Source: Pavona decussata (taxonomy: Eukaryota). From it: 64,000 nt of DNA. The notes under the pieces are model-generated. The model searched no databases, was not told where the DNA came from, and saw only the letters and a list, made by a program, of their open reading frames with translations. The stretch lies in the NCBI GenBank assembly GCA_977016875.1, contig CDRNST010000080.1:806001-870000 (forward strand), in the 5' to 3' direction. The translations under genes were made by a program, and so were the position numbers. This document shows, one piece after another, positions 42,977 to 50,102 of the stretch (its first letter is position 1; each line of letters starts with the position of its first letter).

Positions 42977-43153
42977 AATAGGCCATTTCCGAGTTGCTGT
43001 GAACCTCATTTTGAAAGCGAGGCTAAGTGCAAAACTTTTCATATGAAAATTAGTTTTGTTTGCATATGAATGAAAACTAATTTTCATAATAAAAACTTTG
43101 CACTTAGCTTTGCTATCATAATGAGGTTCAAAGCAACTCGGAAATGGCCTATT
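42977..43153. mobile_element. Palindromic MITE nested in a Penelope-type pLTR remnant
   Basis: AATAGGCCATTTCCGAGTTGC ... GCAACTCGGAAATGGCCTATT. The flanks (CTGACCAAGGGCTAA...GGTGGCCAA | ACCTTA) resemble 29993-30070. Confidence 0.8.
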
Positions 43154-44227
43154 ACCTTACCAACGCTGTCAATAAAACCAAATATTCATAAAAATATAAT
43201 AGAGCCCGGGTAGCCCGACAGCTGTTTTGCCATTGCTAGGCCTTATCAGCAGGGGTATCATATGAACAAATCAAGTGATAACAGAGTGTACAAGGCTGCT
43301 GCCTAAGAAAAATTTTAGGGAGCCCTTCGGGCTCCTAAAGTTTAAAGTTAGGAGCCCGAGCCACATTGTTAGGAGCCCAGTTTGAAATCCATGTATTGTT
43401 TTTCCAAGATCATTACATAGGTTATAGAGGTTCTTGCACACTTTAATAAGAATTCGCCGGGCCTAATAAATAACACGTAAACAAGAATTAACCGAATTAT
43501 TTACTTTCATTTATTAATTTATTCAATTAACTTCCACATCTGTTGTGTTCAATGTGACCTAGAAGAGCCTTCAAAGAATTTTCTAAAATGTAACAATTAA
43601 ACTGCTTCTTACCTTTCTTATACACATTCATGAGCCGGAAAAATATTTGAGGGGCTTAATTTGCGTGTAAAAGGAATTTTCTCAATTTTCACAATAAAAG
43701 AATAACATAACAGTAGGTAATTTCAACTCAGAATTATTTACTTGACTTTCACATTTGTTCAGTAACAGTTGTGTTCCACATGACAACTTAACTAGTCTTC
43801 CAAAAACTTTCTAAAGTAGACCAATCCTCTCCTTGCCTTTTTTATACAAGAACAGGAAAAACAGAACAGAACATCAAGTGCCTTATGTAAACCTTAGCCT
43901 GGATGGATCTCATTAAATGAAGTGCTAAACATTTGAGGAATCATTTAAATTGAATAACATTTTCCTATCTGATTCTGTGCTATAAAAGAATTTTATGTCA
44001 ATGTAACTACATTGTAAATTCAAAAGATCATTTTTTTAAGTCTTATAAGTTCTCCAAAACAGCTCGGAGTTGTCCAAAACAGCTCCATTTTAGAAGAGCT
44101 TAATTAGCCCCTCAAATAGTACTGTATTTTACTCAAGGAAAAACTCCCAATTTTGGGTCCAAAACAGATCCTTTGAATTCACAGTGTAGTTTACAATAAA
44201 TTAAATCACAGCATTGAGCAATGTTCA

Positions 44228-47200
44228 TCAGTCTTTTGGTTTTGTCCCCTTAAGAGAACTCCAGGTTCTAGCCTCTGGATGTTTGTCCACCCAGTTCTCT
44301 CGTCGGGCTCTGACACTGTTTTCTCGCCAATGCTTGACTGCATTGGCAAGGTGCCCAGATTGAGCGAAGGCCTTGACTCTCTCTGATTTGTTCAGGCTGT
44401 GGTACTTAACTGAGATACGCAAGTTGTTGTCCAGTGTCCTAGTTGCAAGACTTGAACGCTGAATAGTTTTAGTGCGGTTCATGGAGCTGAAACCTCGCTC
44501 ACAAGCTGCGGTGGACAAAGGCCAGGTGAACACAATCTCGGCAATCAAAAGGAAGTTAGGAAATTCTTCTTGTTTAGAAAACAACACAGAGTAAATGTCA
44601 GGTGTTGTCTTGTGCTTCATTAGACTCACAAGGCTCTTAACTCCCTGCCACTCACTACTGACAGACTCAGCTTTAAAACCAGCTTTTTGCAACTGCTCTT
44701 GGTACCTGTTAGCGATTACACAGAGCTGATCACAACCATAAGACGCTAACTCTTCAGGATCTGTAGGCCACGTGTCTGGATCTAAAACTGAAGAAGCCTT
44801 TACAACTGGGTCGTTAAAGAGGTAATGGAATCGCTCCCCCATGCTCTGTCCAATTTCATCCAAAACAGACTTTCTGATCTTCTCAAATTGTTCAATATCA
44901 TTGTCTTCCCTTTTGATCTCAATTTCTCTGAACACACTGCCATCCCCTGCTTCTTTCAAAAACGCCTCAAGTCTTGGACCATTTAACGACTTCATATTAA
45001 GACACTGTAATTCAAATTTTCGAACTGCTGCCGCTGCGGTTGTAACTGTAAGAAACTCAGCTTGAAAAACCTTACTTAAATGAGCTGCTTCCTCCGCAAT
45101 GTCCCACAGAAAACTGGTAAAGAGCAACCCTCTGAATGAGGTTAAGAACTTGACCGAAAATGATGCTCGCCCCTGTCTACCACTTGATCCTACACGCATC
45201 TCTCTTGTGTTCTGGCAATGCATCATGAGAGTTTTATATCCCCGAAACAGTACCTGGAGTGCGGTTTGAAGATGTGGCAACCATCTAGCTCCAAACACAT
45301 TAGTAGGCTTAGAGATCTGGTTATCTAGTGCTTCAGCTAACTCTCTTAATTCCCTGAGGGCCTTGGCGCTGTAGTGATATTCCTGGTATAAACTGCGAAG
45401 GACATCACGTACTTTCACAAAATCTGGGTATTTTTCTAGGCACTTGACAACTGCCAATTCAAGCTTGTGTGCTCCGCACCAGAATCCCATAAATTCTCTA
45501 TTTTCTTGCCTCAATAAACCAACCACTCCGTTCTTCTCACCTGTCATTGCCGCACAGCCATCAGTTCCCAGGCCTGTAATTTTCTCCTTCCAGGTGACTG
45601 AATTCATGTTGGTTACTCTTTGGAAACAGGAATCAACCGCATCTAAATAACCTCTTCCAGTTCCAGCCTTAGGTTCTTCGATTCCAAGATATGCAGTGAC
45701 CGGTCTTCCAACTGACTTTTCCAAGTAGCGCACATACATAATGGCTTCCTCAATGACACCATGATCTGTACTTCCATCAATCATTAGGGAGAAAAAATTA
45801 CATTCCTTCAATTTGTCTGCGAGATCCTCCTTCATAACAGAGCTTATGTGCTCAATGAACTCAGTACATGCAGATCGTGTTAAGTAAGTTTCACCCAGCT
45901 CCACCCCATTTAACTTTTGAAGCGCACAGAGACTTTAATAGTCATCTAATGGCCGTTCTAATGCTGAAATGTAGAAGGCTGTTTTAAATTTCTTCTCCAT
46001 TTTTTCGTCTTCTTTTTCGTATAACTGCTTACAGCACTTGTACATTTCAGTTTTTTTCGGATCATTTATGGCTTTGTCCGCAGCAATACATTTTTTATGG
46101 TTCTGGCTTGTTTCATGTTTTTTTAATGTTTCGTTTTTGAAGTTGCTTGACCCACTTCTCTTAGCTATTTCACTGTCCTTTGATGCTAAAGAAGGGTGCT
46201 TCGAGCAAACACCACAGTACATTGATTTCACTGCTGTTCCAACAGGTTGTGAATTTGGGTAGGGTGTGTTAGTAATGAATGGCTGCATTGTGCCTTTTCT
46301 TACAAGGTTTATACGCAACCAAGAATGGGCTTGAAGCCACTTCCACTGAAATGACCTTGTCCGTTTTTGTTCATATTCCTTACGTTTGTCCATAGCATTA
46401 GCGTGATTTTCCCTTGTCCTATCCGATTCATCCTTTCCATCTTCTTCTATCTTCCTATTCACCTCAATCTTCCTTTTATCATCCATCGTCGTTGCACTCT
46501 TTACCTTTCTTTCACCCTCCATGTTCTTTTCTGCAGCCATTTTTCTTGCATCCATCTTCCCCTGATCATCCTCCATTTTTCTCTCATCTTCCATATCTGT
46601 TTCGTCCTGCATCTTAAATTCATCTGTCATCTTCGTTTCATCCTGCATCTTCAATTCCTTTTCCATCTTCATGTCATCCTGAATCTTTAATTCTTCCTCC
46701 ACCAGCATTTTTTCCTTCATCTTTATTTTGTCCTCTGTCTTCTTTTCTGTCTTCCCATCATCCCCCATTTTCATTCTTTTATTGTTTATGCCTGCTTCAT
46801 TTCTCTTTTTCTTTTTACATTCTGTTGGAAACCAAAAGTCTTCCAAACTAAACGACCTTTTCGGGGGGGATGCTTTTTTAGTGGACTGGTCAGCAACTTT
46901 GCGGTAGTCTTTAGCAGTTTTGACTGCATGATCGGCATATTCCTTTTTAAAAAGGGGGACAAAGTGGTTAGGAACATAAATAGCATTTGGGCGGCTGTCT
47001 AATCCACCATCCCTTGACCACAGAATATGAAAGCAATCATTATTGGAAAACACGTCTGGCCTGTTAATACGTGGTTTCACTAAGCCATGTAAGAGGGGGC
47101 GAATAGCTTCTGCACAACTTGGATAGATTGTAAAGACAGGCCTGGAAATCACTGTGGAAAGTGCCATGATGTGCATCAGCGACGACCATTCACCTAGCTG

Positions 47201-48770
47201 ACATCCCCCAATTGCCTCACTCTGGATAGCAGACTCACGGTTGCCACTGTGCTCCCACTCTGCTATTCCATTTTCTTTCAGTGCGAGCGTGAAAACGGTG
47301 ACTTCTCCAAAGGGACACCCACATTGAAGAGCTTCCCGGAATCGCGGATGGTTTCCATAGTAGGCAGTATTTTCAAACAGCTCAATGGCTGTCAGAATAC
47401 GAAGACAAGTAGAGTATTCTGTTGTACCCACAAGGGCCAGAGAAATGGCGTGGTACAGGCAATTTCCATCCCCAGCGACTTCATGAGCAATAAGGCCAGT
47501 TGGTGCATCACACGGAATAAGGGACTGTGCCAGTTGGTCTTGTTTTAGCTTATCAGATCTCGGGAAGGACTGGTTAAGGTTTAATTTTCGCGAATATTTG
47601 TCCCTTAACTTGCAACACAAATCTTGGTTATTGCTAATCAGGGCTTCTTTCAAAGTTTTTAAGTCAGCAACCTGAAATATAAAGAAAACCGGCCCACTCT
47701 GTGAACTGTTCAAAACTTGTTATATTTTATTGAGGACCTTGGCCTCAATGAGGCTAGACCAGTTATACACAGTGTAGCGTTACTATAAAGATATCAAGTG
47801 GCATTTCATTTTAAAATATCTTATATCTGTCACTAAAGGAATAAAGATTCCCGCGGCCAAACCCCGAAAGATTTTGTATTTGTAAGCGAATAAAAATATA
47901 GCCCAATTACAAGTCAGTATCAGAAGAAAACAATTGATAACCGAAGTACCGTATTTATTCACTTATAAGACGCACCTTTGTTTACGAAAATTTGTGCTTG
48001 CTCGATAAAAATTTTCTCAAAACTCGGGGTGCGTCTTATAACCGAGTATTTTCCCGCAACAAAATTTAACTTTGCCAAATTTCCTTATAATTAATGTTCA
48101 ACTAAGATGAGAATGAATAAACAAGAGATTCATCGTTGCATGGTCATCTTGAAGGTAAATTCCTGGTTTGGTTATGGAAAAGAGAGATTCTCCATCTGAG
48201 CCGTCAGAACTGGTTACCTAGCACGTGATCAAAATCTGCCCCGATCAAATTTCCTTCCACGACAAAAATAGCCGTGTCACGAAAATGATATTTGTTACAT
48301 TTCAAGCGCTACTGTCTTAAACTTTCTGCACTTTTCTGTGAGCATGTTCCAGAACCAAACTCAACATCAGTGTATCGAAGCTGTAGAAACTGTACGCGAA
48401 AAGAAGCCGTTTTTATTATAAGTGAAATATCAAGCTTACAGTATCTTTGATCTCAAAACAAACGCGGTTCAAATTTCATTAGTCAAAGAAAATTTGCATG
48501 AATTTGCGAGGCAATCACAGACAGCTACCTAGCTGATCTGCTATTTCGTTTAGAAGGTCAAGAATGTCAAGTTGTCACTACGGATTAAATAAAACCGCAT
48601 TGAATATAGGTCAAATGAAGGCACAGCATCTTCGGTTGTGTTTTAAAAGCGGGAAATATATTTCATTGTTTTGAAAGAGACAGTTTCCAAATCGTTATCT
48701 ATATTAATATAAATGTTCACATACGGAGTCGTAAGAAATAAACATTGCTTACCTGTTGCGAGAATTCCAT
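44228..48770 (-). pseudogene. OTU (Vertnin-like)-zinc finger-hAT transposase fusion, ~1150 codons, with one in-frame TAA at 45935-45937
   Basis: Predicted exon 1 48753-48770 (MEFSQQ|GTAAGC) splices in phase 0 to exon 2 44228-47671. The two track ORFs are in the same frame: LDDY*SLCALQKLNGVELGETY. OTU motifs GDGNCLY and PNHFVPL; Zn-finger MYCGVC...HETSQNH; ZNF862-like catalytic motifs IDGSTD, GTDG, CGAH, RW and STAACERGFS. Confidence 0.88.
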
Positions 48771-48887: not shown

Positions 48888-50102
48888 GGCGCTAAGCACG
48901 TGCAGCAAGGCAGAAATACAACCAACACAAAGTTGATCATTACTTTAATTTCTTTATTCAAGGTAAAGACATCACATTACAAATATGAAATATCATACTG
49001 CGTTCTCTGGCGTGTTGTTTTTTAAAGTCTCTTGAAAATGCTGATACGTTGCAAACTGGTACATGAAATCGAACATCAAGCACGTCCAGTCGATAGCACG
49101 CAAGATAGCTTCCCATTCTCGCCACAAAAAAGTTATCAAATCGACGAAAACCCAAGCAAACGATGAACTGCACGAATGTCAACATAGGCAACAAACAGCC
49201 CATAATTTTGCTATTCCATATTTGGAAGTCAAATCTCAGACCCAGTCTTCAACTGCCATCCGGACTCGGAAACGATGGCTTCGTTCGTTTCGACAAAGCT
49301 TCACAGTTGAACACGTTAGGTTTACATAATTTACGGTTTACTTGTGGAAATTTTATACTGCCTAATCGCATCATCGCTAACCATATCAACAGTTCCACTG
49401 TTTAAAGTCCTACTCCAGCTAAAGGAATATAATGTACAAGGAGGTTAAGTCTAATGCCGTGTGTTAAGTCAGGCGCCCGCGCGGGCTCCTTGTACCGAAA
49501 TTTGGTCGCCCATGCTCTTACCTTGGGCGCCTCTGGCGACCGGGCGCCCGTTAGGCAGCAGCCTTGGTGTAACACTTGTGAGATGTGGCTAAGAATGACA
49601 GTCACTAGTACTGCACATGCACACAGTGCTAACTTATAGCTACTGAAATGGGAACCCAAGGCCACGTTTGTAGCATTACCTCCTTGATGTAACTTAAAAA
49701 AAATGTATATTAAGCTCGAGAGTCAGTTTTCAGCTGTAGTCTGTCTCGCCTGAGTGAAATGTAACAGTAAATACTAGCAACAAACTTTTCAAACTGGCAT
49801 TCTTTGGAGGAGACAAATGTCTAATGAGAATTTAAAGATAGCTTCCAATAAACCAACCCAAGTTTGTGTTCTTGAGTATTCTGCAATTCTGGGTTTAAAA
49901 GTACAACAATTATTTTAATATTTTCTAGGGCTTTCAACAACTACTAAAGATTGTCAAGGGCTCCAGATGAGCCCAAATTTCTCCAACTAAAACAACTGGA
50001 CCAACATATCTACAAGATAATCACTAAAATAATAATATTGTCCAAGACCTTCTATTACTAGAAAACATCACAACAGAACCTCAGGCCTTTCAGGATTTCC
50101 AG

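Follow-up and report, generated by a model that had tools for sequence, protein, structure and literature searches.

A stretch of 64,000 nucleotides from the scleractinian coral Pavona decussata (GenBank assembly GCA_977016875.1, contig CDRNST010000080.1, positions 806,001 to 870,000 of the forward strand; hereafter the window, with positions counted from its first letter) contains a hAT-type DNA transposon whose minus-strand gene encodes, ahead of the zinc finger and catalytic core of a hAT transposase, a domain of the OTU cysteine-protease family. The transposon represents a very young autonomous element of the hAT superfamily, of the type flanked by 5-bp target-site duplications (TSDs), in a copy that is dead. 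The OTU domain is under purifying selection with its active site intact, and the OTU-hAT fusion has a long history and a wide distribution among hAT elements. The whole is read as a young hAT element with an A20/VCPIP1-like OTU protease at its N terminus, followed by a PIP-box-like motif, a linker, a zinc finger, the transposase core and a dimerisation domain, in which the OTU protease would be active and would aid transposition; a probability of roughly 0.7 is assigned to this reading.

The OTU domain and its spread on hAT elements

A first-pass annotation of this DNA had proposed a vertnin-like OTU protease domain, with catalytic Cys and His intact, from a set of short motifs. All of these motifs are found in the minus-strand translation (Table 1), and the resemblance to OTU domains exceeds chance in both sequence and predicted structure. 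The Pfam OTU model (PF02338) scores 25.2 bits over residues 81-195, above its cut-off of 23.3 (E 2.6e-5), and the A20 OTU domain was matched in a direct sequence search of the PDB (E 0.002). An AlphaFold2 model of the domain, built from an 11-sequence alignment, has a predicted local distance difference test score (pLDDT) of 82.3 and a predicted template modelling score of 0.81. In Foldseek comparisons against the PDB, the model matched the OTU domains of Cezanne, A20, VCPIP1 and TRABID with a probability of 1.0 (E 2e-5). The structural aligner VIA-align returned OTUD3 (Z 12.6, root-mean-square deviation (rmsd) 3.2, 137 aligned residues), VCPIP1 (Z 12.5, 182 aligned) and A20 (Z 12.3), and all of its top 50 entries are OTU domains. 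The predicted structure thus bears out the proposed fold, and the assignment, made on a model, is solid.

The active site is the most conserved part of the domain. Among 79 aligned relatives, mostly 21-40% identical to the window protein, the sole invariant residues are G69 and C71 of a G-x-C motif and H236 of an NHF motif, and both residues that the first-pass annotation had assigned as catalytic are thus conserved across the family. The residue three positions before the catalytic Cys is Asp or Asn throughout and Asp in the window protein, fitting a D/N-G-x-C pattern. Measured against two related families, L021 and L022, the ratio of nonsynonymous to synonymous divergence (dN/dS; dS ~1) is 0.18-0.22 for the OTU domain and 0.11 for the transposase core. 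These are between-family values; the near-identical copies of the window element offer 41 singleton substitutions, which are too few for such an estimate and presumably neutral once a copy has inserted. A protein fragment from Porites lobata (P0177) gives an 85% match to the OTU region by BLASTP.

The OTU domain lies outside the canonical hAT architecture, as had been remarked, yet it is found on many diverged hAT families. At least seven further families in the same genome (L024-L029 and L031) carry OTU domain, zinc finger and hAT core in collinear order, with identities to the window element of 30-43% in the OTU domain and 25-30% in the core. OTU-hAT fusions are also present in protein collections (P0002, P0003, P0004, P0008, P0066, P0099 and P0100), and one of them, P0004, starts with a proper ATG. 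An exhaustive profile search returned 6463 family members at E < 1e-3, 292 of them at E < 1e-30. In a quick tree, 10 of 12 hAT-linked OTU domains fall into one group and the two others, both long-branched, fall elsewhere; a single acquisition of the domain by hAT elements is compatible with this tree and is not proven by it.

The same OTU clade is also joined to other partners: the RepHel protein of Helitrons (P0052, P0126, P0152), DUF7869 (P0047), a Death domain (P0142), LRAT (P0006) and large open reading frames (ORFs) containing a SAP domain (L030, P0162). In this last group, which comprises L030 (G000:C256:38313-43289), L032, L033 and P0033/P0162, the OTU domain heads very large ORFs of up to 1659 aa in which a SAP domain accompanies a conserved W-Y-x-x-x-G-R motif and no transposase is recognisable; these may represent an unclassified mobile element. 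P0006, a gene model from Dreissena polymorpha, consists of three tandem OTU repeats and LRAT, and together with the OTU-Death protein P0142 it may reflect host domestication of a mobile OTU module.

The transposon, its copies and its gene

The limits of the element were set by comparison with eight sibling loci in the same genome, the alignments of which span the window copy from its first base to its last with none extending beyond. The OTU domain lies inside perfect terminal inverted repeats (TIRs), as first proposed, and these are flanked in turn by the pentamer GTGTA (Table 1). The TSD is a different pentamer at each other locus. Five-base-pair TSDs were found at the window copy, at seven of the eight other full-length copies fetched and at four deletion derivatives; the eighth sibling, L013, is truncated at one end. 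In all 12 insertions with both ends readable the duplication is 5 bp long, unlike the 8 bp that is canonical for hAT elements. This length fits the 'hAT5' subgroup of Repbase and RepeatMasker, and it therefore points to a subgroup rather than against membership of the hAT superfamily. In the remaining respects, the short perfect TIRs and at least 13 insertions with differing flanks, the element has the ends and the mobility of a hAT transposon.

The 5' end of the element occurs at 13 loci in the genome, nine of them full-length copies and four internal-deletion derivatives. The full-length copies have a mean divergence of 0.16%, and 41 of their 44 variable sites are singletons, which indicates a very recent burst. 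Every full-length sibling retains the OTU domain, and in five of them the frame is open over 1169 codons. The four derivatives (L036-L039, on contigs C10, C204, C122 and C126 of G000) are 1215-2243 bp long and have lost the entire ORF; their breakpoints differ from one another, their TIRs are intact, and each is flanked by a 5-bp TSD of its own. A fifth deletion form, with its joint at 44298->48656, is represented by an RNA-library contig, such contigs being available from four libraries, three polyA/cDNA and one metatranscriptomic. The deletion forms look like non-autonomous elements that arose by abortive gap repair and were mobilised in trans. Immediately beyond the element's left end, window positions 43000-43130 form a near-perfect hairpin with 58-nt arms, 86% complementary, and a 15-nt loop, which may be a small miniature inverted-repeat transposable element or a foldback repeat.

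The minus strand from 44231 to 47713 is a single reading frame of about 1160 codons with one internal stop. The OTU domain thus shares its frame with the zinc finger and the putative DDE core, as claimed, and in siblings this frame is open; in the window copy it is interrupted by a private TAA, which falls after the zinc-finger region and ahead of the catalytic core. The window copy also has an 18-bp in-frame deletion relative to its siblings near 46565, in the repetitive linker. This 18-bp segment is an in-frame indel among the copies, and the inserted 18 bp occurs in two variants among the RNA contigs.

Downstream of the linker, a zinc finger and a hAT dimerisation domain both score above their Pfam cut-offs (Table 1). 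In the core, D65, G138, G144, G148, C165, H168, R229 and W230, which belong to the motifs LMIDGSTD, TDG, CxxH and RW, show no variation among relatives that are about 20% identical; the CERGFS motif is present in the window element and lies beyond the last invariant column of the distant-relative alignment. DUF4371 and FAM200-ZBED5_RNase-like domains are precomputed in Pfam for P0001, a protein that matches the sibling frame from end to end at about 99% identity, and for relatives.

The gene appears from its sequence to consist of two exons and to encode a transposase of about 1160 aa. Exon 2 has no in-frame ATG upstream of the catalytic Cys. A pyrimidine tract and a CAG acceptor lie directly upstream of VADLK, which places the start of exon 2 at 47671, the same base at which the first-pass annotation had set the upper limit of the domain. 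In otherwise diverged upstream DNA, the three families represented by the window copy, L021 and L022 have one invariant island in common, ATGG(A/C)(A/G)(T/C)TCTCGCAACAG followed by GTAAGC, which supplies a start ATG with a favourable Kozak context, six codons and a splice donor and has a unique match in the window, at 48753-48770. The N terminus of P0187, an NCBI eukaryotic gene model from another coral, Desmophyllum pertusum, reads MEFSQQINDLK, exactly the predicted splice product. A TTG at 47653, read as 'M' in P0001-P0003, was considered as the start and rejected: it stems from prokaryote-style gene calls, as does the 'M' of L021 and L022, which is likewise TTG, and the conserved acceptor, the mini exon and the eukaryotic gene model fit the N terminus better. 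A scan for sigma-70 promoters and terminators was set aside as irrelevant to a eukaryote. One open-frame sibling, L015 (G000:C60), has a 647-bp insertion at about element position 980, within the predicted intron.

Table 1. Features of the transposon copy, in window positions.
Feature	Position	Strand	Details
Whole hAT-type transposon copy	43291..49566	gene on (-)	6276 bp; similarity to 8 sibling loci begins and ends at these bases
Target-site duplication GTGTA	left 43286..43290, right 49567-49571	.	5 bp
Left TIR CAAGGCTGCTGCCTAA	43291..43306	(+)	16 bp; also in L021 and L022 (66-67% protein identity)
Right TIR, perfect inverted copy of CAAGGCTGCTGCCTAA	49551..49566	(-)	16 bp
Exon 1, predicted coding part ATG GAA TTC TCG CAA CAG (MEFSQQ)	48753..48770	(-)	followed by donor GTAAGC
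Predicted intron, GT...AG	47672..48752	(-)	1081 nt; pyrimidine tract and CAG acceptor conserved in window copy, L021 and L022
Exon 2 coding region (OTU, linker, zinc finger, transposase)	44231..47671	(-)	one stop in window copy
OTU cysteine-protease domain with N-terminal helical extension	46931..47671	(-)	model residues 1-247; Pfam PF02338, AlphaFold2, Foldseek, VIA
OTU-region motif GDGNCLYHAISLAL	47432-47473	(-)	
Catalytic Cys codon, in GDGNC	47459..47461	(-)	invariant in 79 aligned family members
OTU-region motif LRILTAIEL	47378-47404	(-)	
OTU-region motif WSSLMHIMALSTVISRPVFTIYP	47120-47188	(-)	
OTU-region motif ILWS	47015-47026	(-)	
OTU-region motif PNHFVPL	46952-46972	(-)	
Catalytic His codon, in PNHFVPL	46964..46966	(-)	invariant in 79 aligned family members
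PIP-box-like motif KRSFSLEDFWF	46829..46861	(-)	disordered tail after OTU domain
K/E/D/M-rich linker with imperfect repeats	46352..46828	(-)	159 aa, OTU to zinc finger
zf-C17orf113 zinc finger	46070..46228	(-)	BED-like DNA-binding domain of this hAT group; Pfam PF25431, 32.9 bits vs 29.5
Premature TAA, private to window copy	45935..45937	(-)	GAA in siblings and in all four RNA-library contigs
hAT transposase core	44231..45934	(-)	conserved motifs
Core motif LMIDGSTD	45764-45787	(-)	
Core motif GLGTDGCAAM	45545-45574	(-)	
Core motif WCGAHKLEL	45455-45481	(-)	
Core motif ARW	within 45272-45295	(-)	
Core motif CERGFS	within 44477-44515	(-)	
hAT C-terminal dimerisation domain	44429..44599	(-)	Pfam PF05699, 31.2 bits vs 21.4

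The PIP-box-like motif, vertnin and the role of the OTU domain

The disordered tail that follows the OTU domain contains a short motif resembling a PIP box. A similar motif follows the OTU domain in 12 of 49 representative relatives, against 1.9 +/- 1.4 in shuffled tails. It has the pattern K/Q-x-x-[ILM]-x-x-[FY]-[FYLMW], is often succeeded by runs of K or R, and lies 25-45 residues past the OTU His motif whatever the downstream partner (P0004, P0007, P0008, P0013, P0026, P0090, P0092, P0099 and the L024 group). P0004 (QxxLxxFF) and P0013 (QxxIxxFF) have canonical PIP boxes. This pattern of occurrence suggests a candidate PCNA-docking site, which is to be taken as a lead and not as a finding.

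The likeness to vertnin (VRTN), a vertebrate transcription factor, noted in the first-pass annotation concerns the OTU module. In a search of the Atlas by shape, a vertnin cluster is the best match after a cnidarian OTU cluster, with a template modelling (TM) score of 0.72 over 229 residues (rmsd 3.2); the match spans model residues 1-247, the N-terminal helices included, and other OTU families in the same search reach a TM score of 0.57 or less. A language-model search excluding PF02338 also listed vertnin, at 0.82, which is a lead only. A visual comparison with the published vertnin alignment (PMC3024977, Additional file 9) shows collinear motifs, given here with the vertnin form first: SLYPEDAP/SLIPCDAP, GEG.LLF.AAS..L.G/GDGNCLYHAIS..L.G, LR.RT..EML/LRILTAIEL, W..YALASV..RNIYSIYP/W..MALSTV..RPVFTIYP, IRP....IRPR/IRP....VKPR, LHIMW/FHILW and YFAPV/HFVPL. 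The N-terminal domain of vertnin is thus the same OTU variant as that of the window element, N-terminal helical extension included.

The two proteins differ in the active site and outside the OTU-like domain. Vertnin is counted among the inactive homologues of OTU proteases (PMC10318531), its catalytic Cys being replaced by Leu and its His by Tyr (PMC3024977), whereas both catalytic residues are intact in the window OTU domain, which is therefore a relative of the module and not a member of the vertnin family. The remainder of vertnin consists of Vertnin_mid (PF28388) and repeated helix-turn-helix (HTH) motifs of the IS3/IS911 type (PMC3024977; Atlas cluster annotation), and it is a single-copy host gene without hAT finger, core or dimerisation domain. 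Conversely, neither HTH_Tnp_1 nor HTH_23 was found in a Pfam scan of both ORF pieces of the window element. The best explanation is that vertebrate vertnin carries a catalytically dead relative of the transposon-borne OTU module, to which it is the closest structural match among non-cnidarian clusters. The further suggestion that the transposon might be related to a mobile ancestor of VRTN is overstated and holds for the OTU module only: the remainder of vertnin is of the HTH type, and members of the same OTU clade are carried by Helitrons and other elements as well. There is no support for a hAT ancestor of VRTN.

In the favoured reading, the OTU domain would be an active deubiquitinase, or a protease of ubiquitin-like modifiers, that travels with the transposase and helps transposition. 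Its most likely action would be to strip ubiquitin off the transposase or off proteins present where the element excises or integrates, and the most economical role would be to shield the transposase or its partners from ubiquitin-dependent turnover. Such protection is the role proposed for the Helitron-encoded VTD deubiquitinases (PMC9741609). The PIP-like motif could recruit the protein to PCNA at sites of replication or repair.

A bolder proposal would make the OTU domain and the PIP-like motif together a portable, PCNA-tethered deubiquitinase that unrelated transposons (hAT, Helitron and others) have acquired repeatedly and of which vertnin is a domesticated, dead descendant. Such a module might work where DNA is being replicated or repaired, its substrates being for instance ubiquitinated PCNA or the transposase. 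This proposal is speculative and is put forward with low confidence.

Several observations count against the reading of an active protease that aids transposition. Because of the premature TAA, the window copy itself is unable to make the full fusion protein. The AlphaFold2 model of the transposase core, built on a 6-sequence alignment, has a pLDDT of 36 and is unusable, and sequence and profile searches of the PDB with the core matched no solved hAT structure; the DDE assignment consequently rests on motifs. The RNA-library contigs, from four studies, are collinear with the DNA across the whole element, unspliced and without an exon 1-exon 2 joint, so that splicing and expression are inferred only; contigs of this kind can neither show expression nor exclude a spliced minority or DNA carry-over. 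The Gln of canonical PIP boxes is missing from KRSFSLEDFWF, and its binding to PCNA is conjecture. Vertnin was not retrieved by a word search with the OTU region, among the top 150 of the exhaustive profile search or by a word search with the 79-sequence profile to E 10; the vertnin link rests on structure and on motifs matched by eye. Erven et al. 2022 (PMC9741609) note that assays of OTU domains from transposons are altogether lacking.

That last point, the lack of a measured activity for any transposon OTU domain, also favours the view that the domain is a catalytically silent scaffold that binds ubiquitin or other proteins, as proposed for vertnin, or a passenger exon with no role in transposition, and so does the inactivity of vertnin, its closest non-cnidarian structural relative. 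A silent domain is nevertheless unlikely: the Gly-x-Cys and His are invariant among relatives that are otherwise so diverged, whereas vertnin has replaced both catalytic residues, and dN/dS is ~0.2. Moreover, the fusion is kept in many diverged hAT families, and the OTU domain is never lost alone, the ORF being kept or lost as a whole. Self-processing, one of the roles raised in the first-pass annotation, would have the OTU domain act as in some RNA-virus polyproteins and free itself from a conventional hAT transposase. Viral OTU proteases are among the structural matches (Foldseek and VIA), and a long disordered linker does separate the OTU domain from the DNA-binding and catalytic parts. In the window element, however, the stretch from the His motif to the zinc finger contains no Gly-Gly or LxGG-type site, its one conserved linear motif resembles a PIP box and not a cleavage site, and the best structural matches are cellular deubiquitinases of the A20, VCPIP1 and OTUD3 type. 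For want of a Gly-Gly site in the linker this role finds no support, and it is considered very unlikely.

The OTU-hAT protein is almost certainly neither a domesticated host gene nor an annotation chimera of a host OTU gene beside a hAT remnant. Some family members do occur in host-like contexts, with Death or LRAT domains, but the OTU domain of the window element lies inside perfect TIRs with TSDs, has been copied with the element to at least nine loci at 99.8% identity, and forms one continuous open frame with the transposase in the siblings; non-autonomous derivatives exist as well. The copies have no shared flanks and hence are not segmental duplications, and the structure of the copies already refutes this explanation.

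Relation to known systems

Transposon-encoded deubiquitinases are known from Helitrons and Ginger1, and what they contribute to transposition is a question that the present family can address. It offers a compact test system: a very young cut-and-paste element with intact copies, natural non-autonomous derivatives, a defined active site and a candidate PCNA-docking motif beside the protease. It also offers a concrete connection, in structure and motifs, from a mobile OTU module to the developmental regulator vertnin, which is of unexplained origin.

OTU domains on Helitrons/Helentrons and on Ginger1 have been published (Bao et al. 2010, PMC2836005; Erven et al. 2022, PMC9741609). Similar to the window element, these transposons encode a protein with an OTU cysteine protease whose catalytic residues are intact, and the Helitron-linked OTU domains P0052, P0126 and P0152 belong to the same clade, as defined by hidden Markov models, as the window OTU domain. 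The arrangements differ. In Ginger1, the OTU domain is C-terminal to an integrase-like DDE domain, and in Helitrons it accompanies RepHel, whereas in the window element it is N-terminal on a cut-and-paste hAT transposase. No description of an OTU-hAT fusion was found in the literature searched, Repbase reports not being covered.

The window protein resembles deubiquitinases of the A20/Cezanne/TRABID/VCPIP1/OTUD3 type in fold and active-site layout (Z 12.0-12.6), with weak sequence similarity to A20 (E 0.002). It differs from them in being only 14-21% identical, in having no zf-A20, UBX or ankyrin domains, and in being encoded by a mobile element.

In the rest of its architecture, the element is similar to Buster-like hATs of the FAM200-ZBED5-C17orf113 type, with which it shares the zf-C17orf113 finger, DUF4371, the predicted FAM200-ZBED5 RNase-like core, the dimerisation domain, short TIRs and internal-deletion derivatives. 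To this plan it adds an N-terminal module of about 290 aa, in which the PIP-like motif follows the OTU domain, and a further 160 aa or so of charged linker. PIP boxes on proteins of transposition have a precedent in the pogo transposase, and LINE-1 ORF2p reportedly has one too. The window transposase likewise has a short motif of the PCNA-interaction type, but here the motif is non-canonical and putative, and it adjoins a putative deubiquitinase domain.

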